Assembly: GCF_035084215.1 (NCBI RefSeq)
Contig: NC_090366.1
Span: forward strand, 3,596,001-3,660,000
Length of the DNA stretch: 64,000 nt
Direction of reading: 5' to 3'
Source of the DNA: Heptranchias perlo
Lineage: Eukaryota
Each line of letters starts with the position of its first letter. Position 1 is the first letter of the stretch. This document shows, piece after piece, positions 18,865-53,822 of the stretch. The notes below the pieces were generated by a model that searched no databases, was not told where the DNA came from, and saw only the letters and a list, made by a program, of their open reading frames with translations. Made by a program: the position numbers and the translations under genes.

Positions 18865-19032
18865 TCATTTAAATTTAATTGCGGCGTATTCACTGGACTC
18901 CGCATTCTGGAGATATTTTTCATGTTTGCGAACGTTTGATACTTTGACAGCTGCGTACAGTAAATTTTCTCTTCCTGCTGATTGTTTGGCGGCAGCCCCT
19001 CTAACATCACTGTTTGCATACTGGCCTTGGCT
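18865..19032 (-). CDS. Gene B terminal cytoplasmic exon with ITIM and ITIM-like motifs
   Basis: ttccag| phase 0 SQGQYANS...NLLYAAVKV...ESSEYAAIKFK*. Confidence 0.88.
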   Translation of the reverse strand, partial: SQGQYANSDVRGAAAKQSAGRENLLYAAVKVSNVRKHEKYLQNAESSEYAAIKFK

Positions 19033-19516
19033 CTGGAACAGAAAGTAGGAATTAGATATGGAATTACTGCTAGGTGGGAGTGCGCTTCCTGTACCAGAAT
19101 AACTCGCGTTATTCCCTACCTGGTATATTCTAATGTCCCTGTTCATTGAGTAAAGCATTTTAAGCTCAAATACAATAAGTAACGTGTGTTTGCTTAGCAC
19201 CTCATTACAGCATATTGTAACCAACGGATTACATTTAAAGTACATCAGCTAATTTGCCCACAATAAAAGGAAATGAGTGAAATGACCTGGCGATCAATTT
19301 TGGTGACGTTTCGACCAATTTTAACCATTACATGCTGAGAAATCCCGACTCTTCTTCCAATATTGCATTGAAATTTCTAACATCCAACTGAACTACTGGA
19401 ACAGGCAGCCGAGGCTCTGGATTAAGCAGTCATCTGAAAGACGGCACCTTCCTTAATGCAGCACTTGCCCTGTACTACATCTCAGTCAAACTCTGGATGC
19501 AAGGTTCAAAATGTGA

Positions 19517-19860
19517 CATAGAAACACAGAAAATAGGAGCAGGAGTCGGCAATTCCGCCCTTCGAACTTGCTCCGCTATTCAATATGATCATGGCTGATC
19601 CTTTATCTCAATACCATATTCCCGCTCTCTCCCCATACCCCATGTTGCCTTTTGTATCTAGAAATCTATCCAGCCCCTTCTTAAATATATTCAGTGACTT
19701 GGCCTCCACAGCCTTCTGTGGTAGAGAATTCCACAGGTTCACCACCCTCTGCGGGAAGAAATTTATCTTCATCTCAGTCCTAAATGTCCTAACCCGTATC
19801 CTGAGACAGTGACCCCTCGTTCTGGACCTCCCAGCAAGGCGAAACATCCTCCTTCCATCC
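19517..19860 (-). mobile_element. CR1 LINE 3' fragment
   Basis: RTRGH..NFFPQRVVNLWNSLPQKAVEA motif plus 3'UTR; a related fragment lies at ~20680-20905. Confidence 0.85.
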
Positions 19861-19942
19861 ACGTTTGGTGAAGTAGATTTTGAACCGACAACACTGTGAA
19901 ACGGAACGTGGGCGCGACCAACGCAGCCAAACCAGTATTAAT

Positions 19943-21270: not shown

Positions 21271-21358
21271 TTCATTGTTAAACGGATGCTGCACCGCAGC
21301 GGAAATCACTGAATCGCTGTTTGTTGGTGGGACACTAACGGTGTCTCTTGCCTTCTTC
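21271..21358 (-). CDS. Gene B membrane-proximal cytoplasmic exon
   Basis: gaatcag|G..GAA|gtaaat, 88 nt, phase 2 to 0, exactly bridging the TM and terminal exons; RKKARDTVSVPPTNSDSVISAAVQHPFNNE. Confidence 0.75.
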
Positions 21359-22900: not shown

Positions 22901-22949
22901 CGAAATTTAACTTTTTTTTGGCACTTGAGTCCAAAATTTAGAAGAATGG

Positions 22950-23340: not shown

Positions 23341-23489
23341 CTTAGAAGCGAAGGAGACTAAGCCAAGGTCTAGAGTAGGATTATTCTGGTCTGTTATTCC
23401 AGCGGGGAGAAGTGATAGACAACTCTTAGCTGAGTTTCAGGGTCAAAGCTTTCAAGGGTTAATTATTTGAAGAAATAGCATCATAATAA

Positions 23490-24370: not shown

Positions 24371-24466
24371 ACAATAGTTACTCAGAGGCAGAAATCCTGA
24401 TGTCATGGACCCCTTTCAGATCTGTGATTAACACAAGAGTTCATGTAAACTATGCACCACACATAC

Positions 24467-24551
24467 CTCCGTACCATCACCGCGATCAGAAACAGGATGA
24501 TCAAAGTAGCCGCTGCTGCAACTGGGATGACAATTTTCCAGGGAAAAGTTC
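24467..24551 (-). CDS. Gene B transmembrane exon (uncharged core)
   Basis: tttcag|GA..AG|gtatgt, 85 nt; GTFPWKIVIPVAAAATLIILFLIAVMVRR. Confidence 0.85.
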
Positions 24552-25220: not shown

Positions 25221-25685
25221 CATAGAATCATAGAATCAAAGAAGTTTACAACATGGAAACAGGCCCTTCGGCCCAACATGTCCATGTCGCCCAGTTTATA
25301 CCACTAAGCTAATCCCAATTGCCTGCACTTGGCCCATATCCCTCTATACCCATCTTACCCATGTAACTGTCCAAATGCGTTTTAAAAGACAAAATTGTAC
25401 CCGCCTCTACTACTGCCTCTGGCAGCTCGTTCCAGACACTCACCATCCTTATTTTATAGACTTCTATAAGATCACCCCTTAACCTCCTACTCTCCAGGGA
25501 AAAAAGTCTCAGTCTATCTAACCGCTCTCTATAAGTCAAACCATCAAGTCCCGGTAGCCTCCTAGTAAATCTTTTCTGCACTCTTTCTAGTTTAATAATA
25601 TCATTTCTATAATAGGGTGACCAGAACTGTACACAGTATTCCAAGTGTGGCCTTACTAATGTCTTGTACAACTTCAACAAGACAA
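25221..25685 (-). mobile_element. Young CR1 3' fragment with an internal deletion
   Basis: Near-identical to the 43600-44206 region; (catagaat)n tail; VYKI fused to VSVWNELP. Confidence 0.9.
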
Positions 25686-27148: not shown

Positions 27149-27433
27149 CTGCTAAATTGTGTTGATATTTCCCGAAACTAACGCCGTGCTCGTTTGCTGC
27201 AACACATGAGATCTGGTTTCCAGTTCCAGTTGGGTGAGTCAATATCAGGGAGCTCTGCACCAAGTGACCATTCACTGCCCAGGAGATAACTTCATCTGAA
27301 CTGTTCCTCGTGACGTTTCTTCCATTGAGACCCCATGTGATATTTGCCGGGGGGTTGGCTCTGACACTGCAGGTACAATCAATCCCACTCTCACAAATGG
27401 TGCAATTCGGGCCTGATACTATTGAAGGTTTAT
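27149..27433 (-). CDS. Gene B exon: membrane-proximal Ig domain 4
   Basis: tttag|AT..GCAG|gtaatc, 285 nt; SGPNCTICESGIDCTCSVRANPPANITW...ISCVAANEHG. The C..CxC pattern recalls MAG d5 and the Siglec-5/10/11 proximal domains. Confidence 0.88.
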
Positions 27434-28048: not shown

Positions 28049-28233
28049 CACGGGGGAAATATCACCCATGCGTAGTCACTGTGCAACGGATCATTGATGT
28101 CCCTTTATACATTTAATAGATTCACACTGTACTTACGTTGTATAAAAATCTGTGTGGAGCTGTTTGCGGTCCCCTAGTTATCTCCAGCCATGCGCCAATG
28201 TTATATATATGTTACGTTTGATCCTCAACAGAA
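28049..28233 (+). repeat. Left arm of 185-bp inverted repeat flanking the Ig3 exon
   Basis: Aligns without gaps to the reverse complement of 28763-28947, e.g. ctgtacttacgttgtataaaaatctgtgt and agttatctccagccatgcgcca. Confidence 0.9.
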
Positions 28234-28397
28234 CCTGGTGTGAGGAAGATTAGCTTTCCAAATATCAATGAGATGAATAGGAAATGATTAACTCCAGTAC
28301 CAGTCTGCGAGTTTTGATGGTGATTGTTTATAACAGTGAATAACTTCAGTAAATTAATATAATAAAGAGAATGAACGTAGTTTCACACCGCACTTAC

Positions 28398-28655
28398 ATT
28401 GCACAGAAATCTGTGTGAAGCTCTTTGCGTTGCCTACGATATTTTCAGCAACGCACCAATATTGTCCGTCATCTTTAGAACTAATGTTGTGAAATATCTG
28501 CCTCAGTTCACCGGTGGAAGACATGCTGATCTCCGAACCATCTCTCACCCATCTTAAACTGACCGGTAGTTCACCCTGGGCCATGCAGTACAGTAATACT
28601 GAACTTCCTTCCACTGCTACTATCGAGGAATTGACGATTGGTTCCCGAGAGGCAG
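28398..28655 (-). CDS. Gene B exon: Ig domain 3 (C2/I-set)
   Basis: accag|CT..CAAT|gtaagt, 258 nt; VEGSSVLLYCMAQGELPVSLRW..DDGQYWCVAENIVG. Confidence 0.88.
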
Positions 28656-28762
28656 CTGGTAATGCGGAGGTCATTGGCGGTAAATGAGAATTCCAGCACA
28701 TAAGACAAAAAAAACAATTTAAGTGACAACCAGAGAGCAATATGTCGTGACTATTTTGTTAA

Positions 28763-28947
28763 TTCTGATGAGGATCAAACGTAACATAAATGTAAGAATG
28801 GCGCATGGCTGGAGATAACTTGGTCACTACAAACAGCTCAACACAGATTTTTATACAACGTAAGTACAGTTTCAATCTATTAAATGTATAAGGGGACATC
28901 AGTGATCCGTTCCACATTGACTACGTATGGGCGTTATTTCACTCGTG
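28763..28947 (-). repeat. Right arm of 185-bp inverted repeat
   Basis: Reverse complement of 28049-28233, roughly 85% identity by eye. Confidence 0.9.
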
Positions 28948-29618
28948 ATGTCTTATTCCTTCAGCTCATTTCAAACATAAGCATCTTTCCCCCTCTTGTC
29001 ATTAAAGATTTGTCTGTTTGCCCGGGTAAAGTTCTAGTCCAGCGTTACTTCAACAAAGTGAACATTCCTCCCAGAACAAGAACTTGGTCGACTTTCCCTT
29101 CCCTCACACAGGGATGTTGAGGCCAATTGTAGCATCTCGACCCAACCGCACCAGTTAATTCAAAACAGACACTCCTGCTCTGTATGATGCATTCAAGGGC
29201 AAGGTCGAGAAACACACGACAGTAAAAAGAATAGAAGGTCACGTTGATGGGATTGGATGTAGAGAAGTGGGAGAAGGATCATTTGGTGCATAAACGCCAG
29301 CACGAGCACGTTGGGCCGAATGGCCTGTTTTTGAGCTGTACATTTTATGTAATGTTAATCAGTTACTCTGTGGCAAAAACGGCATCTGGCATTGGGATCC
29401 ATTGGAATCATTTTGTACACAAACCACACCCGTGGAACCACCAATATTACTCCAATGGTTTGGGGAAAATATTAAGCAAAGGGACTGACAAGAATTAGGT
29501 CTTAGACAGTTCGATTAATTGATTTTCCAGTCGAGCTCTCACTACAATGAGAATAATAACAACTTCACAACCTGTTTACCAACAGGTTGGGTGAATCAAG
29601 CATAGAGCGGGTATTTAC

Positions 29619-29930
29619 ATTTACCGGCCAGTTAAAGAGTTTCTTGAACAGTAGCTTCGACACCTTCAACAATAAGTTTACACCCCAGCGTTTTCCCATG
29701 ATGGTCTGATGATGGGACGAATGTGAAAATGGATGAAACCCTCCGGGAATCATCGAAACCGTTGACATTTTGTTCGGAAGTTTTAGTCTCTGTCAGAAAA
29801 GGAAAGTAACCTTGATCATAAGTATACTTCAGCTCAAGGTTGGCGGATTCGCAACTGTGGGTGATCGAGCAGGTCAGTTGCGCTGGTTGTCCAGCGATCA
29901 ATTCCCCAGAGACTGATATACTTGGATTTT
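29619..29930 (-). CDS. Gene B exon: Ig domain 2, with in-frame TAA near its 3' end
   Basis: Paralog of 819-1130; QETL* where paralogs have ACA (Thr); the conserved C-strand Trp is also changed to Tyr. Confidence 0.88.
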
Positions 29931-30791: not shown

Positions 30792-31172
30792 CTAAAATAG
30801 AAATATTGGCCTGCGATCTGGAAGTGTATTGTTCTGTAACATTCCGGGCAGCGGTGATCTTCGGTCTGAAGAAATAGTCACCATCATCGCTCTTCCTGAT
30901 ATCTTTTATCCGTAAGGAACATTGTTTCTTTGCAAAGTTGCCGTTCAACTCAGTTCGTCCCATATAATTAAGGCTTATATTGTCTGAACTTTTGAGATCA
31001 TAGACAATAAAGACCCTTCGGCTACTAGGATCATAACCCCCCTTAAACCACACACCCCATGGACTGTGACCATCGACTGCATAATCAAATGTACACGGGA
31101 GCTCTGCACATGAACCCTTCACTGCCGACACAAACCACGGCATCTTCACAGACCATCGTGAACTCTGGACAA
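30792..31172 (-). CDS. Gene B V-set exon (Arg retained; GC donor)
   Basis: 381 nt, GSCAELPC..CSLRI..DDGDYFFR; donor reads AG|gcaagt. Confidence 0.9.
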
Positions 31173-31549: not shown

Positions 31550-31592
31550 CTTCGCTAAATACCAGAATTAAAATAACATTTAGGCTCTTCAT
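31550..31592 (-). CDS. Gene B signal-peptide exon
   Basis: MKSLNVILILVFSE + G|gtaaaa, 43 nt. Confidence 0.8.
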
Positions 31593-32190: not shown

Positions 32191-33092
32191 TGTAGGCTCG
32201 ACACAAGAATCATTTCGATCTCAGGCTGACAGCTGAAGTGGTGTGTGGTCAGCCAAGAGTCTCCGGCAGTTCATATGATTCTATCTCATTGTCTCGGCAC
32301 TGTTCACATTGGGAATGAGTCAGTGTCTCACCCGTTGTTCTCATTGAGTGTGGCTGCACCGAGGTGCGTTTATTTACACCGTGTGCCAGTACAGCTCCAG
32401 AGCAGGGGTGTAAAGAGCTCGGTTCTATTTAGTGCCCAATTAGTTGCGGTTTATACAGCAACTATGTATCGCTGCTATCTATGACGCTCTTGGGGTGTGA
32501 ATCATTCTAGAAAATTAAACCAGAATGAGCTTACTTGTGGTCAGGTAACATCCGGTTATAGTTTGTGCTGCATCGTGAATGGAGCTGTTGTGTTTTCAGC
32601 TGAATGTTTAAAGTGCAATGCATGTGAGAGTTCAGAACGTGAATATTAATAATATATCTACATTATTAAAAATACCTGCTAATAACAATGGCGTTATTAA
32701 TGTGTCAGTTGTGGCTCAGTGGGGAGCGCAGCATGAGGCACAAGTGTGAGCATGTAACACCGTCCAAGGCGGATTTCTACCCTAACATGTTCTGAAAAGG
32801 AAGGATGGATTGGGAAGGGACAGGAACAATCAGTTTACTGGTAAATAGTAAAAGATCCCCCGTGTACTCGCAGTTTGTGGCGGGATGAAACACAGTGGAC
32901 CCACCGCGCCTCCTATTTGGAACAGCCAGAAACTAAACATGCATTCGAACTCCTGGCAATAACTATATTAACATGTCGCTGTACAAAGGTGCAGAGGCAG
33001 GAGAGACCAGAGTGAGGTTCTCCCCACTCTGTCCCATGGCAGTTTCAGTTTCGCAAAACTGATTCTTACTAATTCGAAGCAGAATTACTCCT

Positions 33093-34750: not shown

Positions 34751-34758
34751 TGTTGCAG

Positions 34759-37728: not shown

Positions 37729-38154
37729 TTTATTGGAGCGAATAGAAAATGTTAAAAAGTTGCACTGACGACTAAAGCCCGCCGCCGCTGTATTTCAGAC
37801 GCATGGTTAGAATGAAAACACGTGTGAAATTTTAAATCAAATATTCCAACAAACCGAATTGAACATTTTAGCAATTCATCTCCGAAAGATATCCATTTCC
37901 GCAGAGCTTCCCGAGTGTCAACTTTCTGCTCTACTCATCAAACTAGTTGCGTTAAGATATTGATGAGCTCCATTTGTCCAAAAGGAGTAAATGCCGAAGG
38001 ATTTCATTTAAATTCAATTGCGGCGTATTCACTGGATTCCTCATTCTGGAGATATTATTCCTGTTTGCGAAAGCTTCGAACATTGATCGCTGCGTACACA
38101 GTGATTGGATAGATGCATTCCTCCAACACCAATGTCTGTCTCTGGGCCTTGGCT
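37729..38154 (-). other. Gene C last exon: decayed ITIM exon, predicted to be 3'UTR now
   Basis: ttgcag|AGCCAAGGCC homologous to 19032; a net 17-nt loss puts TVYAAI and SEYAAI out of frame, with a TAA between them; AATAAA at 37734-37729. Confidence 0.7.
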
Positions 38155-40629
38155 CTGCAACAGAAAGCGGTGCGTTAGATATGGAGAGACTGGACCCTCT
38201 GAGAGTTAGCTTTCTGTACCAGAGTAAACGTCTTTATCCCATCTCTATGTGGACAGACTATTTCAACTAGATGGGTAAGGGAAAACAAGGGCCCATCATC
38301 GAAATACATAAAGGTAGTTTACATATCGGGAGGTTATTTTGTTCGGGCAAAGTGTCAATGATGCTTCGATCATCGATCTCTGCTGCCTTACTATGTTCCC
38401 ACTCAGTAACGAGAGCTTTTTGAGCTTTGCGTTGTACAAACATAAAAAAAGGCGGACAGGGAAAGTACCAACTGTCATGACGCTGGCGTTCTCTCCCACC
38501 ATCATGTAATCTCTCGCGAGATACAAAAAAAGAGATAAAAAGAACGAGGCCAATTCAGGGAAAAGAAATCCTTGCGGGGAGGTTTGCTAGCACTGTTGGG
38601 GGGTGGTGGGGTTAAACTAATTTTGCAAGGGGATGGGATACAGAGTGGAGCTACAATAGGGGGTGTTGTGCAGCCAAATATAGAGAAAAAAAAAATTCAG
38701 CTTGGAAGACAGGGCAAATATGTGAGGGCAAGGCTGGATGGCATCTATTTTAATGCAAGGAGTCTTGCGAATAAGGTGGATGAACTGAAGGTGTTGATAA
38801 ACACATGGGAGTATGATATTGTTGCTGTCACAGAGACATGGTTGAGGGAGGGGCAAGACTGGCTGCTCAATATTCCGGGGTACAGAATCTTCAGGCGAGT
38901 CAGAGGGGGAGGTATAAGAGGAGGGGGGTGGCAATATTAATTAAAGAATCAATTACTGCCATAAGGAGGGATGATATATTAGCAGGTTCCTCTAATGAGG
39001 CCATATGGGTGGAGCTTAAAAACAAAAAGGGGGCAAGCACTTTGATGGGAGTGTACTATAGGCCCCCAAACAGTCAGGGGGAGATAGAGGAACAGATATG
39101 TCGGCAAATCTCAGAAAATTGTGCAAATAATAGGGTAATAATAGTGGGGGATTTCAACTTCCCCAATATTAACTGGGATACTCAGAGTGTAAAAGGCTTA
39201 GAGGGTACAAAATTCTTAACGTGCATCCAGGAGAGCTTTTTGAGCCAGCATGTAGAAAGTCCTACAAGAGAGGGGGCGGTACTGGACATAATTCTAGGGA
39301 ATGTGGCCGGCCAAGTGGAAGAAGTGCTAGTAGGTGAACACTTTGGTGACAGTGACCATAATTCGGTGAGATATAAGGTGGTCATGGAAAAGGATAGCGA
39401 GGGGCCGGAAATAAAGGTTCTAAATTGGGGGAAGGCCGATTTTAATAGGATAAGGCAGGATCTGGCCAAAATGGACTGGGATCAGCTGCTTGTAGGAAAA
39501 TCCGCATCGGAGCAATGGGAGTCTTTCAGAAGGGAGATTGAGACCATACAATGGCAATATGTTCCCGTAAAGGTCAAGGGTGGTTCCAAGAACTCCAGGG
39601 AACCTTGGATGTCAGGGGATATACGAGAATGGATTAGGAAAAAAAGGACGGCTTTTGGCAGATACAAAAGGCTAAAGACGGAGGAAGCCCTAGAGGAGTA
39701 CAAAAAGTGCAGGGGGATACTTAAAAAAGAAATTAGGAGATCAAGGAGGGGCCATGAAATAACACTGGCGAGCAAAAGAAAGGAAAATCCTAAGATGTTT
39801 TATAAGTATATTAAGGGTAAGTGGATGACTAGGGGAAAAATAGGGCCCATTAGGGACAAAAATGGCAATCTGTGTGTGGAGCCGGCAGATGTAGGAGGGG
39901 TTCTAAATGAATTTTTTGCATCTGTTTTCACTATGGAGAAGGACGATGTAGACATAGAAATACGGCAGGGGGACTGTGATATACTCGAACATATTAACAT
40001 CGAGTGGGAGGAGGTATTGGCGCTTTTAGCAGGCCTAAAAATGGATAAATCCCCAGGCCCGGACGAAATGTATCCCAGGCTACTGTGTGAGGCAAAGGAG
40101 GAGATTGCGAGGGCTCTAACACAAATATTCAGAACCTCTCTGGCCACAGGGGATGTGCCAGAGGACTGGAGGACCGTTAATGTAGTACCATTATTCAAGA
40201 AGGGGAGTAGGGAAAAACCGGGGAACTGCAGGCCAGTGAGCCTAACATCAGTGGTAGGAAAATTATTGGAAAAAATTCTGAAGGACAAAATTAGTCTCCA
40301 CTTGGAGAAGCAAGGATTAATCAGGCATAGTCAACATGGCTTTGTCAAGGAACGATCATGTCTGACTAATTTGATTGAATTTTTTGAGGAGTTGACGAGG
40401 CGTGTGGATGAGGGTAACGCAGTGGATGTGGTACACATGGATTTCAGTAAGACCTTCGATCAAGTCCCCCACAGGAGACTGGTCAAGAAGGTACGAGACC
40501 ATGGAATCCAGGGTGCCTTGGCACTTTGGATACAAAACTGGCTTAGTGGCAGAAGGCAGAGGGTGATGTTCGAAGGTTGTTTTTGTGACTGGAAGCCTGT
40601 GGCCAGTGGGGTACCACAGGGATCGGTGC

Positions 40630-41164
40630 ACAGGAGGGCAGGAAAAAGAGTGGCAGAGCTATAGTGATAGGGGACTCGATTGTAAGGGGAATAGACAGGC
40701 GTTTCTGCGGACGCAACCGAGACTCCAGGATGGTATGTTGCCTCCCTGGTGCAAGGGTCAAGGATGTCTCGGAGCGGCTGCAGGACATTCTGGAGGGGGA
40801 GGGTGAACAGCCAGTTGTCGTGGTGCATATAGGCACCAACGATATAGGTAAAAAACAGGATGAGGTCCTACAAGCTGAATTTAGGGAGTTAGGAGTTAAA
40901 CTAAAGAGTAGGACCTCAAAGGTAGTAATCTCAGGATTGCTACCAGTGCCACGGGTTAGTCAGAGTAGGAATGACAGGATAGCTAAGATGAATACGTGGC
41001 TTGAGAGATGGTGCAAGCTGGAGGGATTCAAATTCCTGGGCCATTGGAACCGGTTCTGGGGGAGGTGGGACCAGTACAAATTGGACGGTCTGCATCTGGG
41101 CAGGACTGGAACCAATGTCCAAGGGGGAGTGTTTGCCAGTGCTGTTGGGGAGGGTTTAAACTAA
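40630..41164 (+). CDS. CR1 ORF1 C-terminal SGNH/GDSL esterase-like domain (partial)
   Basis: IGDSIVR, HIGTND and DGLHL blocks, characteristic of CR1 ORF1 esterase domains. Confidence 0.9.
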
Positions 41165-44112
41165 TGTGGCAGGGGGATGGGAACCGATGCAGGAAGCCAG
41201 TGGGAAATAAAGTGGTGACAGAAACAAAAGGCAGTAAGGGAGAGTGTACAGAACATGACCGGACAGATGGTCTGAGAAAGCAGGGCAAAGACCAAGGGAA
41301 GTCTAGATTAAACTGCATTTATTTCAATGCAAGAAGTCTGATGGGCAAGGCAGATGAACTCAGGGCATGGATGGGTACATGGGACTGGGATGTTATAGCT
41401 ATTACTGAAACATGGCTAAGGGAGGGGCAGGACTGGCAGCTCAATGTTCCAGGGTACAGATGCGATAGGAAAGATAGAGCAGGAGGTAAGATAGGAGGGG
41501 GAGTTGCGTTCTTGATTAGGGAGAACATCACGGCAGTAGTGAGAGGGGATATATCCGAGGGTTCGCCCACTGAGTCCATATGGGTAGAACTGAAAAATAA
41601 GAAGGGAGAGATCACTTTGATAGGATTGTACTACAGACCCCCAAATAGTCAACGGGAAATTGAGGAGCAAATATGTAAGGAGATTACAGACAGCTGCAAG
41701 AAAAATAGGGTGGTAATAGTAGGGGACTTTAACTTTCCCAACATTGACTGGGACAGCCATAGCATTAGGGGCTTGGATGGAGAGAAATTTGTTGAGTGTA
41801 TTCAGGAGGAATTTCTCATTCAGTATGTGGATGGCCCGACTAGAGAGGGGGCAAAACTTGACCTCCTCTTGGGAAATAAGGAAGGGCAGGTGACAGAAGT
41901 GTTAGTGAGGGATCACTTTGGGACCAGTGATCATAATTCCATTAGTTTTAAGATAGCTATGGAGAAGGATAGGTCTGGCCTAAAAGTTAAAATTCTAAAT
42001 TGGGGAAAGGCCAATTTTGATGGTATTAGACAGGAACTTTCAGAAGTTGATTGGGAGAGTCTGTTGGCAGGCAAAGGGACGTCTGGTAAGTGGGAGGCTT
42101 TCAAAAGTGTGTTAACCAGGGTTCAGGGTAAGCACATTCCTTATAAAGTGAAGGGCAAGGCTGGTAGAAGTAGGGAACCTTGGATGACTCGGGAGATTGA
42201 GGCACTAGTCAAAAATAAGAAGGAGGCATATGACATGCATAGGCAGCTGGGATCAAGTGGATCCCTTGAAGAGTATAGAGATTGCCGGAGTAGAGTTAAG
42301 AGAGAAATCAGGAGGGCAAAAAGGGGATATGAGATTGCTTTGGCAGATCAGGCAAAGGTGAATCCAAAGAGCTTCTACAAATACATAAAGGGCAAAAGGG
42401 TAACTAGGGAGAGAGTAGGGCCTCTTAAGGATCAACAAGGTCATCTAAGTGCGGAACCACAAGAGATGGGTGAGATCCTGAATGAATATTTGACATCGGT
42501 ATTTACGGTTGAGAAAGGCATGGATGTTAGGGAACTTGGGGAAATAAATAGTGATGTCTTGAGGAGTGTACATATTACAGAGAGGGAGGTGCTGGAAGTC
42601 TTATCGCGCATCAAGGTAGATAAATCTCCGGGACCTGATGAAATGTATCCCAGGACGTTATGGGAGGTTAGGGAGGAAATTGCGGGTCCCCTAGCAGAGA
42701 TATTTGAATCATCCACCGCGACAGGTGAGGTGCCTGAAGATTGGAGAGTAGCAAATGTTGTGCCTTTGTTTAAGAAGGGCGGCAGGGAAAAGCCTGGGAA
42801 CTACAGACCAGTGAGCCTGACATCTGTAGTGGGTAAGTTGTTAGAGGGTATTCTGATGGACAGGATCTACAGGCATTTGGAGAGGCAGGGACTAATTAGG
42901 AACAGTCAGCATGGTTTTGTGAGAGGAAAATCATGTCTCACGAATTTGATTGAGTTTTTTGAAGGGGTAACCAAGAAGATAGATGAGGGCTGTGCAGTAG
43001 ACGTGGTCTACATGGACTTCAGCAAAGCATTTGACAAGGTACCGCATGGTAGGTTGTTACATAAGGTTAAATCTCATGGGATCCAAGGTGAGGTAGCCAA
43101 TTGGATACAAAATTGGCTTGACGACAGAAGACAGAGGGTGGTTGTCGAGGGTTGTTTTTCAAACTGGATGCCTGTGTCCAGCGGTGTGCCTCAGGGATCG
43201 GTGCTGGGTCCGCTGTTATTTGTTATTTATATTAATGATTTGGATGAGAATTTAGGAGGCATGGTTAGTAAGTTTGCAGACGACACCAAGATTGGTGGCA
43301 TTGTGGACAGTGAAGAAGGTTATCTAGGATTGCAACGGGATCTTGATAAATTGGGCCAGTGGGCCGATGAATGGCAGATGGAGTTTAATTTAGATAAATG
43401 TGAGGTGATGCATTTTGGTAGATCGAATCGGGCCAGGACCTACTCCGTTAATGGTAGGGCGTTGGGGAGAGTTATAGAACAAAGAGATCTAGGAGTACAG
43501 ATTCATAGCTCCTTGAAAGTGGAGTCACAGGTGGATAGGGTGGTGAAGAAGGCATTCAGCATGCTTGGTTTCATTGGTCAGAACATTGAATGCAGGAGTT
43601 GGGATGTCTTGTTGAAGTTGTACAGGGCATTGGTGAGGCCACACTTGGAGTACTGTGTACAGTTCTGGTCACCCTATTATAGAAAGGATATTATTAAACT
43701 AGAAAGAGTGCAGAAAAGATTTACTAGGATGCTACCGGGACTTGATGGTTTGACTTACAGGGAGAGGTTAGACAGACTGGGACTTTATTCCCTGGAGAGT
43801 AGGAGGTTAAGGGGTGATCTTATAGAAGTCTATAAAATAATGAGGGGCATAGATAAGGTCGATAGTCAAAATCTTTTCCCAAAGGTAGGGGAGTCTATAA
43901 CGAGGGGGCACAGATTTAAGGTGAGAGGGGAGAGATACAAAAGGATCCAGAGGGGCAATTTTTTCACTCAAAGGGTGGTGAGTGTCTGGAACGAGCTGCC
44001 AGAGGCAGTAGTAGAGGCGGGTACAATTTTGTCTTTTAAAAAGCATTTGGACAGTTACATGGGGAAGATGGGTATCGAGGGATATGGGCCAAGTGCAGGC
44101 AATTGGGACTAG
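41164..44112 (+). CDS. CR1 ORF2: AP endonuclease + reverse transcriptase, uninterrupted (982 aa from the ATG at 41164)
   Basis: NARS, ITETW, GDFN, SDH (APE); KSPGPD, YRPVSL, DFSKAFD, GVPQGSVLGP, FADD (RT); TAATG stop/start overlap with ORF1. Confidence 0.95.
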   Translation: MWQGDGNRCRKPVGNKVVTETKGSKGECTEHDRTDGLRKQGKDQGKSRLNCIYFNARSLMGKADELRAWMGTWDWDVIAITETWLREGQDWQLNVPGYRCDRKDRAGGKIGGGVAFLIRENITAVVRGDISEGSPTESIWVELKNKKGEITLIGLYYRPPNSQREIEEQICKEITDSCKKNRVVIVGDFNFPNIDWDSHSIRGLDGEKFVECIQEEFLIQYVDGPTREGAKLDLLLGNKEGQVTEVLVRDHFGTSDHNSISFKIAMEKDRSGLKVKILNWGKANFDGIRQELSEVDWESLLAGKGTSGKWEAFKSVLTRVQGKHIPYKVKGKAGRSREPWMTREIEALVKNKKEAYDMHRQLGSSGSLEEYRDCRSRVKREIRRAKRGYEIALADQAKVNPKSFYKYIKGKRVTRERVGPLKDQQGHLSAEPQEMGEILNEYLTSVFTVEKGMDVRELGEINSDVLRSVHITEREVLEVLSRIKVDKSPGPDEMYPRTLWEVREEIAGPLAEIFESSTATGEVPEDWRVANVVPLFKKGGREKPGNYRPVSLTSVVGKLLEGILMDRIYRHLERQGLIRNSQHGFVRGKSCLTNLIEFFEGVTKKIDEGCAVDVVYMDFSKAFDKVPHGRLLHKVKSHGIQGEVANWIQNWLDDRRQRVVVEGCFSNWMPVSSGVPQGSVLGPLLFVIYINDLDENLGGMVSKFADDTKIGGIVDSEEGYLGLQRDLDKLGQWADEWQMEFNLDKCEVMHFGRSNRARTYSVNGRALGRVIEQRDLGVQIHSSLKVESQVDRVVKKAFSMLGFIGQNIECRSWDVLLKLYRALVRPHLEYCVQFWSPYYRKDIIKLERVQKRFTRMLPGLDGLTYRERLDRLGLYSLESRRLRGDLIEVYKIMRGIDKVDSQNLFPKVGESITRGHRFKVRGERYKRIQRGNFFTQRVVSVWNELPEAVVEAGTILSFKKHLDSYMGKMGIEGYGPSAGNWD

Positions 44113-44451
44113 CTTAGTGGTATAAACTGGGCGACATGGACATGTTGGGCCGAAGGGCCTGTTTCCATGTTGTAACTTCTATGATTCTATGATTCTATGA
44201 TTCTATGGGTCCCTTGCTGTTTGTGGTCTACATTAATGACTTGGATATGAATGTAAAAGGTATGATCAGTAAGTTCGCTGATGATACAAAAATTGGTAGG
44301 GTGGTAAATAGCGAGGAGGACAGCCTCAGTCTGCAGGACGATATAGATGGGTTGGTCAGATGGGCGGAACAGTGGCAAATGGAATTTAACCCGGAAAAGT
44401 GCGAGGTGATGCACTTTGGAGGGACTAACAAGGCAAGGGAATACACAATGA

Positions 44452-45220
44452 ATCATGGAATCATAGAATCATAGAAGTTACAACATGGAAACAGGCCCTT
44501 CGGCCCAACATGTCCATGTCGCCCAGTTTATACCACTAAGCTAGTCCCAATTGCCTGCACTTGGCCCATATCCCTCTATACCCAACTTACCCATGTAACT
44601 GTCCAAATGCTTTTTAAAAGACAAAATTGTACCCGCCTCTAGTACTGCCTCTGGCAGCTCGTTCCAGACACTCACCACCCTTTGAGTGAAAAAATTGCCC
44701 CTCTGGACCCTTTTGTATCTCTCCCCTCTCACCTTAAATCTATGCCCCCTCGTTATAGACTCCCCTACCTTTGGGAAAAGATTTTGACTATCGACCTTAT
44801 CTATGCCCCTCATTATTTTATAGACTTATATAAGATCACCCCTTAACCTCCTACTCTCCAGGGAAAAAAGTCCCAGTCTGTCTAACCTCTCCCTGTAAGT
44901 CAAACCATCAAGTCCCGGTAGCATCCTAGTAAATCTTTTCTGCACTCTTTCTAGTTTAATAATATCCTTTCTATAATAGGGTGACAAGAACTGTACACAG
45001 TACTCCAAGTGTGGCCTCACCAATGCCCTGTACAACTTCAACAAGACATGCCAACTCCTGCATTCAATGTTCTGACCAATGAAACCAAGCATGCCGAATG
45101 CCTTCTTCACCACCCTATCCACCTGTGACTCCACTTTCAAGGAGCTATGAATCTGTATTCCTAGATCTCTTTGTTCTATAACTCTCCCAACGCCCTACCA
45201 TTAACGGAGTAGGTCCTGGC
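44452..45220 (-). mobile_element. Second young CR1 copy (3' ~770 bp), inverted, nested in the host CR1
   Basis: Reverse complement almost identical to 43432-44206. Confidence 0.92.
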
Positions 45221-45954
45221 AAGACAGAGGTTCAGAGGGATCTTGGTGTGCAAGTTCACAGATCCCTAAAGGCGGCGGAACAGGTAGATAAGGTGGTAAA
45301 GAAGGCATATGGGATACTTGCCTTTATTAGCCGTGGCATAGAATATAAGAGCAAGGAGGTTATGATGGAGCTGTATAAAACACTGGTTAGGCCACAGCTG
45401 GAGTATTGTGTGCAGTTCTGGTCGCCACACTGCAGGAAGGATGTGATCGCTTTGGAGAGGGTGCAGAGGAGATTCACCAGGATGTTACCAGGGCTGGAGC
45501 GCTTCAGCTATGAAGAGAGACTGGGAAGATTGGGTTTGTTTTCCTTGGAGCAGAGGAGGCTGAGGGGGGACATGATTGAGGTGTACAAAATTATGAGGGG
45601 CACAGATAGGATGGATACGAAGGAGCTTTTTCCCTTCGTTGAGGGTTCTATAACGAGTGGACATAGATTCAAGGTAAAAGGCGGGAGGTTTAGAGGGGAT
45701 TTGAGAAAGAACTTTTTCACCCAGAGGGTGGTTGGAGTCTGGAACTCACTGCCTGAAAGGGTTGTGGAGGCAGGAACCCTCACAACATTCAAGAAGCATT
45801 TGGATGAGCACTTGAAATGCCATAGCATACAAGGCTACGGACCAAATGCTGGAATATGGGATTAGAGTAGACAGGGCTTGATGGCCGGCGCGGACACGAT
45901 GGGCCGAAGGGCCTCTATCCGTGCTGTATAACTCTATGACTCTATGACTAAATC

Positions 45955-47156: not shown

Positions 47157-47239
47157 CTCAGTTAAATGGGCTCCGAACCAGAAGGCAAGTCATCGAGCCG
47201 CTGCCTGTAGGAGGGACACCAACAGGGACATTTAACATT
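47157..47239 (-). CDS. Gene C cytoplasmic exon ending in a stop 1 nt before the donor
   Basis: Aligns codon by codon with 21358-21271; ancestral cag acceptor is now caa, with AGs 1 and 3 nt downstream; RMLNVPVGVPPTGSGSMTCLLVRSPFN* g|gtatgt. Confidence 0.6.
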
Positions 47240-50200
47240 CTCTTGATTCAAAAAATACAAATGCTGTCTATCACGTAATTACTGGTAATTAGTTTTAATA
47301 AATCATCCAGTGTCCGTATGGTGAATCACGCGCGTGCACTATCGCAGCAGCGATTTGTTATCATAGTGGCCTTGTAGGTAGAGCACAGGAGGAGACCATT
47401 CGGCCCAGCGGGCCTGTGCCACCTCTTTGAAAGAGCTATCCAATTAGTCACATTCCACTGCTCTTTCCCCATTGCCCTGGATTTTTTTTCCTTCAAGTAT
47501 TTATCCAATTCGCCTTTGAAAGTTATTATTGAATTTGCTTCCACCGCCCTTTCAAGCGGAGCATTCCAGATCATAACAACTCGCTGCGGAAAAAAATATT
47601 TCCTCATGTCACTTCTTTTGCCGATCACCTTAAATCTATGTCCTCTGGTTACCGACCCTTCTGCCACTGGAAACAGTTTCTCCTTATTTACTCTGTTAAA
47701 ACCGTTCATGATCTTGAACACCTCCATCAAATCTCCCCTTAACCTTCTTTCTTCTGAGGAGAACAATCCCAGCTTCTCCAGTCTCTCCACATAACTGAAC
47801 TCCCTCATCCATTGGACTTCCTTGATTAGATGGAACCATATTTCAGTTCCGTTCGCTTTCTATCTCTACACTGCCATAATCCTTAAGGAACGTTTCTCTC
47901 GATCTGATAAAGTAGGTAAATTCTATCGTCATCTGCTTTGACATTCCCAAATTTAGTGTTCACTGTACAGTTTCTGAATGGTCGACTGAGCGCCGGCGAC
48001 TGATGCAAAGTATCTATTTGAAATCACATGTCCTAAACGTTGGCGTGAGTTTGCCCTGCAGTGTCCTGGAATGGCTCTGTGGAGTTTTTTTGTTATTACC
48101 TCCTGAGTCCTGAGTTTTCGATTGGCGTTTGTTTTAAGAACTTTGAACTTACAAGTGAAAGAGCTACGAACGCGCCATGGTCCAGAGTGGAGTTATTCTG
48201 GTCTATTACCAGAGCTGGGAGAAGGGATACACCGATCAGGGTCGATTGACACTCGGATATTGCCCTACTTTCACCACAGATTCACCCGACCTCCATTAAC
48301 CCTTCCCTCCACAACTGGTAGCTAACATTGATGTGCAATGCTTTCAGGTTTTAAGTATTTTAAGAAATATTTTCTCATAGGCTGAAATCCTGATGTCACA
48401 GTCCCTTTGAAATCTGTCTGACTAATTCATGAGTGTAAATAATTGTAAATCATACCTGTATGAATTCCTCTCTATCTTCACCATGGAAATGGCAGCAATC
48501 AGAATGAAAACTGCGACCGCTGTTCTTATTGCCATGACAATTTTCCATGAAATTGTTCCTAAAATATTCAGAAAAAAAGACCTTGCTGCTGACTATTGTA
48601 CTAAGATTACAACACGGTGTTCGGATAGCATTTATCCTCAAGTACCGGAATCTGTAAAGAAAGAACTCGCACTTCACGCCATCCCAAAGCGCTTTACAGC
48701 CAATGAAGTACTGCTGAAAAGTAGCCACTGTTGTAATGCAGGGAACGCGGCAGCCAAATTGCGCATGGGAAGATCCCACAAACAGCGATGAGGTAATGAC
48801 CTCGTGATCTGTTTTTAGTGATGTTGGTTGAGCGATAAATATTGGCCAAGACGCAAGGCGAGAATTTCCCTGCTCTTATTCCAAAGATTAAACAGTACAG
48901 TTTCGAAGTGCAGTCCCAGGAGGGTGTATATGCACATATTGTATCCTCGGATCTGTTTCCGTCCTATCCAATATTTCAATTCAGTCTGTAATCTGCTTTT
49001 TTCCAATTATCCCAGGTATTCTGGCTCCATTTGCAGGATTATCGCACTTTATATTCTTCTCAGAATATCGTCACGGTAACAATCCGAGGAGCAATCTGAA
49101 CTAGACATAAGAACTGCTTCATTAAACTGTGCGAACAGGATGGAACAGAGCTTGTATCAATTGACTGATAGACAGCAGCACGCAACGGTTACAGTGAGAG
49201 GAAACAGGACTTCATACAGCGTGTAATTAATTCAGCAGGTTCCGTTTTGTTGAAGATCGCACGCTACTTCTATTGTTGTATATTAATCCCTTCCGAACTC
49301 AACAAAATCCAGGCATCAGTAAACCTTGGCCGGGTTATGGAAAATCATTGACAAATTTAAAATGGATTATTCCGATTGCAACTTTCAGTGCGTCATTGGT
49401 CGGTGAGGGGCCAGACCCCTTTAGTTCTGAAATTATCCGTCGATTCTGTACTAAATTACTGGTGGATTTGGCAATTAACTGCCAAATGGAGCTGGTATTT
49501 GCTGACGCTAACACCGTTCACCTAATGACGGGCCAATAATCAAAGAACCTTTCTACAGTAATTAAATTGCTGCAAATATCAGGACTTACCTGCTGAATGG
49601 AGTTGATGTTTGCCGAAAGTAACGCCGTGCTCGTTTGCTGCAACACATGAGATCTGGTTTCCAGTACGAGTTGGGTGAGTCAGTGTCAGGGAGTTCGGCA
49701 CCAGGTGACCATTCACTGCCCAGGAGATAACTTCATCTGAACTGTTCCGAGTGATGGTTCTTCCATTGAGACCCCATGTGATATTTGCCGGGGGGTTGGC
49801 TCTGACACTGCAGGTACAATCAATCCCACTCTCAGAAATGGTGCAGTTCGGGCCTGATACTACTGAAGGTTTATCTAAAAAAAAGAGGCAATTTCAACTT
49901 CAGGTAGTTTTCATCAAGCAGTTTGCAGTGTCTAAGTAGAACCGATTTGGACCTTTAGACTAACCAGAGAGGTTACTGCACAGCCGTGTTTAATTGGAGC
50001 CATACAAAGATACATTCGTTTAATGGATCATCAGATTTTGCTTTTTGCGAAATTCTAGCAATCAATAACTCAGTTATAAGTTCACATCGAACCAATGAGC
50101 GGTCATTTGATCCATTTATCTTCATGCTGTGGGCGATTACTCGGTTAGAATACTGTAAACAATACAGACTAACTCACCTCAACTGTCCGTTCTGGTAAAA

Positions 50201-53200
50201 CTGTTAGTATTTAATCTTATAAACTTCTACCTTTGTGATTGACTAACGTGTTCTTCCACTTCAGGGCCGCTGGGATCAATCCCCCGCACATTAATTCTTG
50301 CGTTTCACATCTCACATATTCATTAATTTTGTTTTAACCAGTCCAGATACATTTTACGTGGTTTTGTGCATTGGGCTCTCTGGTTTTTAACGATGTTTTT
50401 TCACTCTAAATATGGTCAAATTCTCCTTCTTTTACTGGCCTTCCTGAAAATATTACTGACATCGGCTATTGAGAGAGTTGTGTGAACACGGGGGAAATAA
50501 CACCAATGCGTAGTCACTGTGGAGCGGATCTCTGATGTCCCTTTTAACATTTAATAGATTCACACAGTACTTACGTTGTATAAATGATATAATGTTAATC
50601 AGTTACTCTGTGGCTAAAACGGTAATCTGGCATTGGGATCCTTTGGAATAATATTGGACATAAATCACACCCGAGGAACCACCAGCATTACTCCAATGGT
50701 CTGGGAAAAATTTTAATCAGAGTGACTGACAAGAATTAACTGATAGACAGTCCTTTTAATTGATTATCCAGTCTCGGTCTCACTACATTGAGCATAACAA
50801 CAACTTTAGAACCTGTTTATCAACAAGCTAGTTGAATCAAGCATAGAGCGGGTATTTACATTCAACGGCCATTGTAAGTGTTTTCTGAACAGTAGCTTCG
50901 ACACCTTCAACTATAAGTTTACATCCCAGCGTTTTCCCATGAATGTCCGAGGATGGGACGAAGGTGAAAATGGATGAAACCCTCCGGTAACCATCGAAAC
51001 CGTTGACATTCTGTTCTGAAGTTTTAGTCTCTGTCTGAAAAGGAAAGTGTCCTTGATCATAAGTCCACTTCAGCTCAAGGTTGGCGGATGGGCAATTGTG
51101 GGTGATCGAGCAGGTCAGTTGCGCTGGTTGTCCAGCGATCAATTCCCCAGAGACTGATATACTTGTTTTTTCTGTAAGGGGAGAAGGAAATTATAGTGAA
51201 TTTCAATTTTGAAAACGGCCAATAATGTGCCAGGCGATTCAACCCAAGGACTGGGAAAATATCACCTTAAAAATGAATCCTGTTCTATTCCTCCTGCTCT
51301 CAGCTGCAGGGAATGATGCCTCAAGTCAATTACTCCTTACAATTACTGAACTAATCGGATCACATATGCACTCAGCCGCTTTATCACATGAATTATTCAC
51401 GTTATTGGCCAGTGAATTAATTTCCACTCACCCCCACTACGTTGCTGACAATTCAAAATGAGCACTTCAAATATCAGCAAGCATTAAACCCGCTCATGTC
51501 CTCATTGGGTAAATAAATTGCTTGATGTGATACTGTACCATTAGGCCAGCCCGGTCCCACATTCCATCCCAAGTCTGTGGCTGGGATAGAACCTGGTATC
51601 TTCTTTGCCCGAACTGCTTCAAAAAACGATGGCTGAAGATAGTCCTGACTGGGAACCGAGAGCCTGATACAATCTTACGGGAGGAAACAACAAACAGGCC
51701 TGTCCTGAAAAAGTCATGCAGTCTTCAGCGGAAATATCATGCTGGTGGTGTGCGATGGAATCAATAATTAAATCAGAATTGGAAATCCGGTCAATTGTCG
51801 CGTAGGCATTAGGTTATTAAATATTGAAAGACAAATCTCAGTCCCAAACCTGCGGGGACTCGGGAAGGTCTCTGTAAAACTTAATCTGTCGGTGATGAGG
51901 AAGCGAAAATTGTGAACTTATATTGTTTAATAATCGGAGAAAGGGACAAATTTAGTAGTTTTAGGTGACTGGGAGTTGCCCTGTGGGTTTCACCACCCAT
52001 CGGTCATTAGGTATTTTGGGAAATTTATTTGTTGAAAATTGTACTTGGACGATTGGAAATTGGTCCTTATTGGCCTTTTCTTTATTATGATAATGGACTT
52101 AAAATTATCACTTGGGATAATAACAGAAGACGTTTCTGTCTAATTTCTTGCCACGCCGTTTTAGTGAGCTTTTCTCCATCTATTCTACACGGGTTAACAT
52201 TTCAGCTAAACCTAAGCATTCAAAGGCTCCAAGTGCATGGTTTAATTTGGCGGCCCGTGAGCTCTTTAACGAATTTGTTTGAGTCGGGTTACTGGGATAA
52301 ATAACCCGCAGTCGTTATTCATGCACTCTTTATGACCTGCGCGGTGTGACAATTCATGGAAAAACGTACAAAGAGACGCGTCCATCTGACTCCCATTGGG
52401 ACTATTCAAGGTAAAGCAGGGATGTTCTCCCCGCTGTCTTGGCCAAAATATATCCACCAAGAAACTCCTAAAAACAGATTACCTGATCATTATCTCATTG
52501 CTGTTTGAGAGACCTTGCTGTGCGACAATTGGCTGGGGGATTTTCTACATTACACAAATCATTACGCTTCAAAGTACTTCATTGGCTGTAAAGCTTATTG
52601 GGATGTCCTGATATTTGAAACTCCCGATATCAATTCAATCTTTATTTTTTATTCCTTTATGATATGGAGACCTATAGGTGATTTGACCCTAGAAATCCCT
52701 CCCGTGTTTAAACCATGTCCACCTTCCCTTCCATCAGAATTGCAAACGATGACTTACTTTTGCGCATCAATTATGGATTGAAGTTTGACCCGCCGGTCTG
52801 TACGGTTGCACTTACTAACTGAACAACGCAGGGCGCTTCTGTAAGTTTTTAAGAATACCAATGCCATTTTTCAACTCAAGTCAAGTATTATTCAATGGAC
52901 CAGCCCGGCAGCTGTCGCCAGTGACGAAGGCCAAAAGTATCACGATAACTTTGCATCCGTGGTTTAAATTAAATGGCACTGAGGAGACGGAATATAAACT
53001 ACAAAAAGAACAAATGAAAAAATCTTACCTAAAATATAAAGACTGACGTGAGATGCGGATGTGTTTTGTTCTATACTATACTGGGATTTGCTGATCTTCG
53101 GTCTGAAGTAATAGTCACCTTCATCACTCTTCCTGATATCTTTTATCCGTAAGAAACATTGTTTCCTTGCAAAGTTGCCGCTCAACTCAGTTCGTCCTCG

Positions 53201-53822
53201 ATAATTAAAGTTTATTTTGTCTAAATCTCGGGGATCATGGACAATAAAGACCGCATGGCTTCTAGGGTCAGAACCCCCCTTCAACCACATACCCCATGGA
53301 CTGTGGCCATAGACGGGATAATCAAATGTACACGGGATCTCTGCACATGAACCTTTCACTGCCGACACAAACCACGGCATCTTCACAGACCATCGTGAAC
53401 AAAGGACAACTGATGAAAAATAGAAATTAAACACCCATTGAAATCCCTAATAACATATCAATTGAAACATTCCATGGCATTCCAGCTAAATACTGTTAAA
53501 AATAACCTTTAAACATTCACGAACATATTCATTAGTACGTCTATTAAAGCGTGTGAAATTATCACTAAAACTCTTTAAATTCCATCAAAATGTCGATTAC
53601 AGTCGAAGAAAACAGAAATATTCAAAAAATATCCTACTAAAATACAGAATAAAAGTCCGAATACAATGTACCTTAAATACCCACTTCTGAATTTACAAAC
53701 CACTAAATAACCATATACGATTTGTATCACTAATTACCTTGTTACTTTGCCACATAAGTTGTTAAAAAGAATATTTTACCGTTGCTAAATAGCAGGATGA
53801 AAATAACCTTAATGCTCTTCAT
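47158..53822 (-). CDS. Siglec-like gene C, putative activating type (V + 2 C2 + Arg-TM + short tail), ~401 aa
   Basis: Exons 53822-53780, 53409-53029, 51171-50860, 49874-49590, 48558-48456 and 47239-47158 join in frame (1206 nt) without internal stops; the acceptor of the last coding exon is the least certain part. Confidence 0.8.
47380..47810 (-). mobile_element. CR1 LINE 3' fragment
   Basis: ERLEKLGLFS.E.RRLRGDL..TRGHRFKV..QRVVMIWN. Confidence 0.88.
48456..48558 (-). CDS. Gene C transmembrane exon with intramembrane Arg
   Basis: ttttag|GA..AG|gtatga, 103 nt; GTISWKIVMAIRTAVAVFILIAAISMVKIERNSYR. Confidence 0.85.
49590..49874 (-). CDS. Gene C membrane-proximal Ig exon
   Basis: Intact 285-nt paralog of 27149-27433, GT-AG. 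Confidence 0.88.
50860..51171 (-). CDS. Gene C Ig domain 2 exon
   Basis: Intact 312-nt paralog of 819-1130. Confidence 0.9.
53029..53409 (-). CDS. Gene C V-set exon (Arg retained)
   Basis: 381 nt; GSCAEIPC..CFLRI..DEGDYYFR; GT-AG. Confidence 0.92.
53780..53822 (-). CDS. Gene C signal-peptide exon
   Basis: MKSIKVIFILLFSN + G|gtaaaa, 43 nt. Confidence 0.8.

Follow-up and report, generated by a model that had tools for sequence, protein, structure and literature searches.

The closest described counterparts of the genes reported here are the human pairs Siglec-5/Siglec-14 and Siglec-11/Siglec-16, linked genes of which one carries motifs of the immunoreceptor tyrosine-based inhibitory motif (ITIM) type and the other a basic residue in its membrane span and a short tail. 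In these pairs similarity is maintained across the ectodomain exons but not in the 3′ signalling parts, and members are often knocked out; null alleles exist in humans. Pairing of mammalian Siglecs and their use of DAP10 and DAP12 are treated in three papers (PMC4042635, PMC7226832, PMC13358205). Here we describe at least four tandem Siglec-like genes from the shark Heptranchias perlo, all on the minus strand of a 64,000-nucleotide stretch of contig NC_090366.1 (assembly GCF_035084215.1, positions 3,596,001 to 3,660,000; hereafter the window) and ordered D, A, B and C by rising coordinates. A first-pass annotation had proposed that genes B and C form an inhibitory/activating pair that evolved independently of the mammalian ones. 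Both genes lie where it placed them, on the minus strand between the gene B stop at 18865 and the gene C ATG at 53822, about 22 kb apart. We put at slightly better than even the reading that the stretch is part of a shark-and-ray-specific tandem cluster turning over by duplication, exchange and decay, with gene C of activating type and gene B of inhibitory type but disabled here. The evidence supports a paired system for the Siglec-like family, here and in other sharks, but not a working B/C pair in this haplotype, because gene B is probably disabled by a stop codon, together with a weakened donor and a lost tyrosine.

For fish, PMC7226832, a paper on teleosts, names only Siglec-1, CD22, MAG and Siglec-15, without CD33-related inhibitory Siglecs. 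The MDIR genes of the clearnose skate (PMC3031540) are a multigene family of immunoglobulin (Ig) type with activating and inhibitory members; their V domains are CD300/TREM-like, unlike the Siglec-like domains here. In the literature searched on shark Siglecs, fish Siglec evolution, shark ITIM/DAP12 and TYROBP/FCER1G, paired Siglec-like receptors are not described from any cartilaginous fish. Siglecs are reportedly named once in the genome paper on the whale shark, which refers to its Supplementary file 9, a file that may list such families. Already known, then, are paired Siglecs in mammals (PMC4042635, PMC13358205) and paired Ig-type families in skate (PMC3031540), and automatic gene models of both receptor types are already present for other sharks.

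Gene C is transcribed and spliced

Gene loci were found by tblastn of seven exon translations against the window (0 N, G+C about 43%), which located Siglec-like V exons at four places (Table 1). For gene C, RNA data came from four runs (X1 to X4) of one sample in one study, as assembled contigs aligned to 47850-53849. Their joints cover all four internal exon borders, and every one carries GT..AG ends on the minus strand. The joint 49589/48557, which brings the second C2 exon to the membrane exon, recurs in 4/4 runs at depths of 218.9, 5.95, 6.92 and 23.7. In run X1, depth is 48-196 in exon bins and 0 in the intron bins 51250-52449, a pattern that fits RNA. Gene C is transcribed and spliced, and its chain of V, C2, C2 and membrane exon is real.

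The contigs continue past the membrane-exon donor (48456) for 274 bases in X1, 425 in X3 and 464 in X4. The first 30 bases of the X1 loose end at 48455 match 47174-47203, their single match in the window, so the next exon starts at 47204. The tail is thus spliced from the membrane-exon donor into the exon at 47204, not produced by reading through the membrane exon. The membrane exon contributes 8 residues to this tail, and these are followed by a split Arg codon and 13 residues of the tail exon; tyrosine motifs are absent, and summing the exon lengths gives a protein of 388 residues. The membrane exon contains VMAIRTAVAVFIL, and its 21-residue hydrophobic run, IVMAIRTAVAVFILIAAISMV (Kyte-Doolittle mean 2.51), has the Arg as residue 6 of 21, in the outer third of the membrane span. 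Gene C omits the counterpart of gene B exon 28655-28398. The three Ig domains, outer-span Arg and short ITIM-free tail that the first-pass annotation had read from the letters are therefore all upheld by the exons, and together they support the view that gene C is built like an activating receptor that depends on an adaptor.

Three further observations concern these RNA data. At 53316 the contigs of X1, X2 and X3 read A in place of G, which turns Pro into Leu at residue 31 of the V exon, an allelic difference relative to the assembly. Run X3 contigs depart from gene C at 7 positions in one Ig exon (49589-49715) and 6 in another (50946-51173), but at 0 in the membrane exon; transcripts of B or D were ruled out as their source, as the read letter is that of neither gene at five of the eight listed places (gene D being comparable only at the four in the first C2 exon), and their likely source is a further C-like gene, or else a divergent allele, that has the same exon of Arg type. 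Finally, a repeat in a gene C intron (48650-48849) reaches summed contig depths of 42,848 to 74,424 across all four runs. As this far exceeds the depth of the exons, the repeat is a dispersed element transcribed in great abundance; Rfam gives no match, and a pattern built from its loose ends matches nothing in the window.

Gene B has an inhibitory build but carries three defects

Gene B has eight exons whose lengths and phases are all compatible. Exon by exon, the architecture attributed to it was recovered: four Ig domains, an uncharged membrane span (hydrophobic run IVIPVAAAATLIILFLIAVMV) and the motifs LLYAAV and SEYAAI. The second of these fits, as we take it, only a wider consensus that admits Ile at +3. 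LLYAAV fits the ITIM consensus as quoted in PMC7226832. The last exon thus combines an ITIM with a distal ITIM-like motif, the tail arrangement of CD33-related Siglecs.

Three defects had been overlooked. An in-frame TAA at 29634-29632 sits five codons ahead of the end of the second Ig exon. At this site gene B reads ETL-stop-LAGK, against KTLTMAVE in C, ETLTLAVK in D and TLTLAVK in the Heptranchias gene model P0170; the others all have Thr. The V-exon donor is GC in gene B and GT in C, D and A. In the middle cytoplasmic exon, gene B has SVISAAV where Mustelus, Heterodontus and Heptranchias proteins have SVTYAAV, so the Tyr of the membrane-proximal ITIM has become Ser. From its sequence, gene B is probably a null allele or else a pseudogene disabled recently. 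Each of its Ig exons is symmetrical, with phase 1 at both ends, and skipping the damaged exon would therefore keep the frame, a speculative route to which we return below.

Table 1. Coordinates of genes, exons and relics in the window. A slash marks an exon border or a spliced joint.
Feature	Position	Strand	Remarks
Gene D, partial	819..3181	-	Intact V exon 3181-2801 and first C2 exon 1130-819; remainder, including the tail, beyond the window
Gene A, dead copy	14190..15598	-	V exon from 15598, Arg-type membrane exon 14880-14782, decayed tail exon
Gene B last exon	18865..19032	-	LLYAAV and SEYAAI, then stop
Gene B middle cytoplasmic exon	21271..21358	-	KKARDTVSVPPTNSDSVISAAVQHPFNNE; located by aligning full-length shark proteins P0004, P0007 and P0037 to the window
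Gene B membrane exon	24467..24551	-	TFPWKIVIPVAAAATLIILFLIAVMVR; no Arg or Lys in the 21-residue run
Gene B third C2 exon	27149..27433	-	Pfam C2-set_2, 2.3e-5
Inverted repeat arms, 185 bases	28049-28233, 28763-28947 (28049..28947 overall)	.	88% complementary; flank the extra Ig exon of gene B
Gene B second C2 exon	28398..28655	-	Pfam I-set, 2.4e-10; absent from gene C; single copy in the window
Gene B first C2 exon	29619..29930	-	In-frame TAA at 29634-29632
Gene B V-set exon	30792..31172	-	GC donor after the exon, TAG/GCAAGT; best PDB match sialoadhesin V domain
Gene B leader exon	31550..31592	-	Reads MKSLNVILILVFSE, then G/GT
Relic of gene C last (ITIM) exon	38004..38154	-	70.8% identical to gene B 18546-19102; acceptor kept
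LINE-type insertions	38572..45865	+	In the former last intron, between the gene C membrane exon and middle relic and the relic last exon
Relic of gene C middle cytoplasmic exon	47158..47242	-	Aligns with gene B 21358-21271; acceptor AG changed to AA, 2-base gap, motif lost
Gene C terminal coding exon	47162..47204	-	14 codons; split Arg codon AG/G, QRLDDLPSGSEPI, TAA at 47164-47162
Gene C membrane exon with Arg	48456..48558	-	Translation TISWKIVMAIRTAVAVFILIAAISMVKIERNSY; acceptor joined in 4/4 runs; donor used
Gene C second C2 exon	49590..49874	-	285 bases; joints 50860/49874 (X1, X2) and 49589/48557 (4/4 runs); homologue of gene B fourth Ig exon
Gene C first C2 exon	50860..51171	-	312 bases; joints 53029/51171 and 50860/49874, runs X1 and X2
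Gene C V-set exon	53029..53409	-	381 bases; joints 53738/53409 and 53029/51171; Pfam V-set 4.3e-9, Ig_CD22 8.6e-8
Gene C leader exon per RNA, alternative donor after 53738	53738..53834	-	Run X3 record 19, depth 3.59, joint 53738/53409
Gene C leader exon, predicted	53780..53822	-	MKSIKVIFILLFSN, then G/GT; matches the leaders of B, D, A and shark homologues; donor not seen in contigs

Siglec identity and phylogenetic position

The genes follow a type I layout of leader, V-set domain, C2-set domains and membrane exon, and Pfam assigns their exons one by one to V-set, Ig_CD22 (the CD22-like first Ig domain) and C2/I-set. In a PDB search with the gene B V exon, the sialoadhesin V domain came first (1.3e-13) with the Siglec Arg aligned (YFFRPK against YNFRFE); Siglec-8, Siglec-10, Siglec-15, CD33 and MAG followed at about 1e-9 (Siglec-15 at 3.2e-9), and CD22 had E = 0.064. 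Six positions (W6, C21, C26, W41, C84 and R102) are invariant in 20/20 aligned V domains. R102, presumably the F-strand Arg that holds the sialic acid carboxylate, is kept in B, C and D and lost in A. The V domains have the three-Cys pattern (C21, C26, C84), which we take to be the in-sheet disulfide plus the Cys for a bond to domain 2, and the first C2 exon has LTCSITH.C. An AlphaFold2 model of the gene C V exon has a pLDDT (predicted local distance difference test) of 83.9, and in Foldseek ranks 1-12 are all Siglec V domains (template modelling score 0.69-0.82; MAG 0.82). Sequence, predicted fold and conserved residues together support calling the genes Siglec-like.

A protein search of 1.84 billion representatives returned 767 proteins at E ≤ 0.001, with best single-domain identities of 52-53%, all from sharks. 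The nearest database proteins are two Heptranchias perlo models, P0170 (84-93% per Ig exon) and P0166 (52-85%). In a tree of 187 V domains, among whose rows no named Siglec-1 or Siglec-15 was present, B, C and D form a clade (Shimodaira-Hasegawa-like approximate likelihood ratio test (SH-aLRT) 95) within a 26-row clade (SH-aLRT 97), to which the database contributes 23 rows, each a named shark or ray protein. Mammalian Siglec-10/13 fall in a separate 33-row clade (SH-aLRT 98), tetrapod MAG (6 rows, SH-aLRT 99) and teleost MAG are placed elsewhere, and the teleost and shark rows named 'CD22-like' lie outside the shark-and-ray clade; the deep forks of the tree are weak (39-86). In V-domain trees B, C and D group with sharks and rays and not with CD33-related Siglecs, and they are not plain orthologues of MAG or of mammalian CD33-related Siglecs. 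The independent origin that had been proposed for the pair fits a clade holding only sharks and rays.

The membrane arginine across the family

Membrane and tail regions were compared across 13 named family members from sharks and rays. Tails of the ITIM type occur in nine of them; two others combine an uncharged span with a short tail, and the remaining two, Mustelus P0030 and Cetorhinus P0032, have Arg at residue 6 and no ITIM. P0032 (Cetorhinus maximus XP_078392811.1, 'Siglec-13') resembles gene C in having a V domain, two C2 domains, Arg at residue 6 and no ITIM, and P0030 (Mustelus asterias, 'MAG-like') is an Arg-span form of the same family and domain order. P0004 (Mustelus asterias XP_078093182.1, 'Siglec-14') and P0170 (Heptranchias perlo, 'MAG-like') have the build of an intact gene B. 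These four shark models are automatic and carry borrowed names; none comes from the window, and their identity to window exons is 40-93%. Gene C, P0030 and P0032 have further features in common. From a conserved Trp to the end of the membrane exon they have 31 residues, against about 25 in the ITIM type (six codons longer), and the exon ends in N-S-H/Y-R, the gene C end being KIERNSY plus the split Arg.

In the V-domain trees each Arg-span receptor groups with ITIM receptors of its own lineage, and Mustelus P0004 and P0030 are sisters with support of 100/98. A tree uniting these three receptors in a single clade was rejected (log-likelihood 229 lower than without this constraint, approximately unbiased test p-AU 2e-7, 29 rows), the group having been chosen after a tree had been inspected. 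Membrane type switches three times among the 12 labelled rows of the V-domain tree. Because the features of the Arg exon are shared while the V domains group by lineage, this sequence pattern suggests an old membrane module whose ectodomains were homogenised or swapped inside each lineage; the common position of the Arg may alternatively have arisen by convergence.

Two proteins of a second Siglec-like shark/ray clade, P0018 (Scyliorhinus torazame) and P0145 (Rhincodon typus), also carry an outer-span Arg (…LILGIRA…) and short tails, and Arg-span forms are therefore not limited to one shark family. A separate peculiarity belongs to P0166 (Heptranchias perlo, 'Siglec-5 isoform X2'), which has no membrane exon and has the two tail exons in another frame and may be a soluble isoform or a model error. 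Its alternative tail frame is also open for 121 codons in the gene B last exon (18654-19019).

The buried Arg of gene C would make surface expression and signalling dependent on a dimeric adaptor with an immunoreceptor tyrosine-based activation motif (ITAM) and membrane aspartates; judging by the Arg position, this adaptor would be of zeta/gamma type, or else DAP12-like. A 2026 review (PMC13107469) describes an Arg close to the top of the CD89 span as its means of binding FcR-gamma dimers, zeta or zeta/gamma as the partners of NKp30 and NKp46, and a central Lys as the residue used by DAP12- and CD3-type modules; in single-pass immune receptors, it adds, an isolated buried Arg or Lys as a rule serves to assemble the receptor with acidic dimers. 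The earlier guess of FcR-gamma or CD3-zeta coupling for gene C agrees with this top-of-span rule. CD89, NKp46 and NKp30 resemble gene C in their single Arg in the N-terminal part of the span, Ig-type build and short tail (PMC13107469); their ectodomains are unrelated, and coupling has been shown there, whereas for gene C we infer it.

Uneven similarity, decay and re-use of exons

Genes B and C are linked on the same strand, and the similarity of their ligand-binding domains is uneven. V domains agree at 69% (B-C) or 84% (C-D) and C2 exons at 86-92%. The ectodomains of B and C had been called closely similar, which is true of the C2 exons (89% residue identity in the first, 86% between the second of C and its counterpart, the third of B) and less so of the V exon, at 69% and with a ratio of nonsynonymous to synonymous change (dN/dS) of 1.25. 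Gene C is closer to gene D in its V domain. Its C2 exons have dN/dS of 0.30-0.56 and are therefore under constraint. At the DNA level, B and C are 87-88% identical in the C2 block, which runs up to the second C2 exon of C and starts with the first, and 67-73% identical from membrane exon to tail; the V exon itself is 85% identical, or 74% with its flanks. Gene C has no counterpart of gene B 28147-29346, a 1.2-kb deletion whose break begins inside the first arm of the inverted repeat that flanks the extra Ig exon of gene B.

Downstream of the membrane exon, gene C retains its past. The former ITIM exons are shown to have decayed, and a piece of one was re-used as the new last exon, which begins at an AG within the relic of the middle cytoplasmic exon. 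In the relic of the last exon the frame is shifted relative to ITVYAAI, and a TAA at 38057 comes ahead of SEYAAIEFK. The former last intron has taken up long interspersed nuclear element (LINE) insertions, with one open reading frame of 1034 residues that is open and holds endonuclease and reverse transcriptase domains (41008-44112) and another of 608 residues with a cut reverse transcriptase (38838-40664). Gene A has zero C2 exons between its V exon and its membrane exon; two stop codons interrupt the V exon, in which one Cys and the key Arg are also missing. Its Arg-type membrane exon is 74.9% identical to that of gene C, compared with 67.3% between C and B. The decayed tail exon of gene A is 74.7% identical to the gene C relic, but with different gaps and a different stop, so the 3′ module of A and C is older than the present similarity of the ectodomains.

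Two repeat features also lie within the cluster. Inverted LINE fragments are 94-97% identical to a fragment in a gene B intron (25221-25684), and a 24-base minisatellite (33091-34753; about 69 copies, 69% matches), between the gene C relic tail exon and the gene B leader, yields long repetitive open reading frames on both strands.

Weighing the alternatives

Several observations weigh against our reading of the cluster. The sole contig that joins the gene C leader to the V exon uses a donor 42 bases further on (53738), and the extra bases include an in-frame TAA. The productive leader-to-V splice was not seen in the contigs of the four runs; those of X1 and X2 for the V exon end short of its 5′ end, in a stretch identical between paralogues. 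The RNA thus confirms the chain from V through C2, C2 and membrane exon to tail, but not its productive start. The canonical donor of gene C is ACG/GTAAAA and the alternative AAG/GTAATT; in B and D the canonical donor is AAG/GTAAAA. Given a stop-leaving leader junction (depth 3.59) at the better-matching donor, gene C may be largely unproductive. All of the RNA evidence, moreover, is from one sample of one study, as assembled contigs with a guessed RNA label. None of the database proteins retrieved is encoded by the window (the gene B V exon query had no match at E ≤ 1e-10 among 13 candidates, and the P0166 query 0/43), so no independent gene model was found for gene B, and none supports gene C. 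The V-domain dN/dS near 1 could be relaxed constraint. The gene B stop may be a polymorphism, or may be bypassed by skipping its symmetrical exon. Finally, a 2014 survey (PMC4016189) did not find the FcR-gamma gene in cartilaginous fish; the remaining candidates would be zeta, a DAP12-like protein or a gene that the 2014 survey missed.

One alternative is that gene C is expressed but unproductive and decaying like A and B, its Arg a leftover without present function. In its favour, a stop codon follows from the one leader junction observed, the canonical donor is weakened and the alternative strengthened relative to B and D, gene A is dead, gene B is broken and the tail exons have decayed. We nevertheless think this fairly unlikely, since four coding exons are intact and properly spliced at depths up to 219, the C2 exons have the low dN/dS given above, and two other shark species share the Arg together with its exon length and end motif. 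The leader junction itself rests on one low-depth contig from the run with the most variant letters. A reading in which the Arg recruits no ITAM adaptor, leaving gene C a signalling-dead decoy or the partner of another membrane protein, could draw on the reported lack of FcR-gamma (PMC4016189, as above). We consider it very unlikely, because a lone buried Arg or Lys generally pairs with acidic dimers (PMC13107469, as above) and the position of this one is conserved in three species.

That genes B and C work as an inhibitory/activating pair whose ligand binding is nearly identical is hardly more attractive, and we judge it decidedly improbable. The genes are linked on one strand 22 kb apart with C2 exons 86-89% alike, gene B is in frame bar one codon and keeps its uncharged span and two tyrosine motifs, and P0170, a close Heptranchias model, shows no damage at either of the two damaged places. 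Against this stand the TAA, the GC donor and the Tyr-to-Ser change in the first ITIM, which leave gene B short of an inhibitory partner with an open reading frame and intact ITIMs, as well as V domains that are 69% alike with dN/dS of 1.25 and place gene C nearer to gene D. The paired system proposed by the first-pass annotation therefore survives for the family, in which both forms exist, and gene C does combine a basic residue in its span with a short tail; it fails for gene B as the intact inhibitory partner. Least probable of all, to the point that we give it almost no weight, is that the genes are plain orthologues of MAG, CD22, Siglec-1 or Siglec-15. The automatic names of their relatives include 'MAG-like', 'sialoadhesin-like' and 'Siglec-5/8/12/13/14', and sialoadhesin and MAG are the best PDB matches; yet those names are inconsistent, there are many copies per genome, CD22 reached only E = 0.064, and the 26-row clade (SH-aLRT 97), with 23 database rows all shark or ray, has MAG, the CD22-like rows and Siglec-10/13 elsewhere.

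Implications

The reading that we favour, a shark-and-ray cluster in turnover with an activating-type gene C and a disabled inhibitory-type gene B, sets this locus beside the human pairs and also apart from them. The shark genes belong to a separate shark-and-ray clade, their V domains agree at only 69% (B-C) or 84% (C-D), the gene C Arg lies in the outer third of the span, and decayed ITIM exons are retained, one of them re-used. Sharks and rays own an expanded Siglec-like family in which some members have ITIM tails and others an Arg in the span; its design follows the logic of the mammalian paired Siglecs and was reached separately. The compromised B/C pair tempers this finding. Gene C is nonetheless an unusually readable case of an inhibitory gene layout turning activating, and a concrete receptor for asking which ITAM adaptors cartilaginous fish use.

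A bolder version, which we hold only tentatively and think rather less than evenly likely, is that an old Arg-bearing membrane module, present in at least three shark orders, has been combined again and again with new ligand-binding domains as neighbouring genes exchanged sequence. Gene C would then be a fossil record of the conversion, with its ITIM exons decaying, LINEs filling the intron and a relic exon re-used, and its partner would be CD3-zeta or an undescribed adaptor because FcR-gamma is reported lacking in cartilaginous fish. If true, paired signalling of the Siglec type, coupled through adaptors, would date back to the base of the jawed vertebrates.

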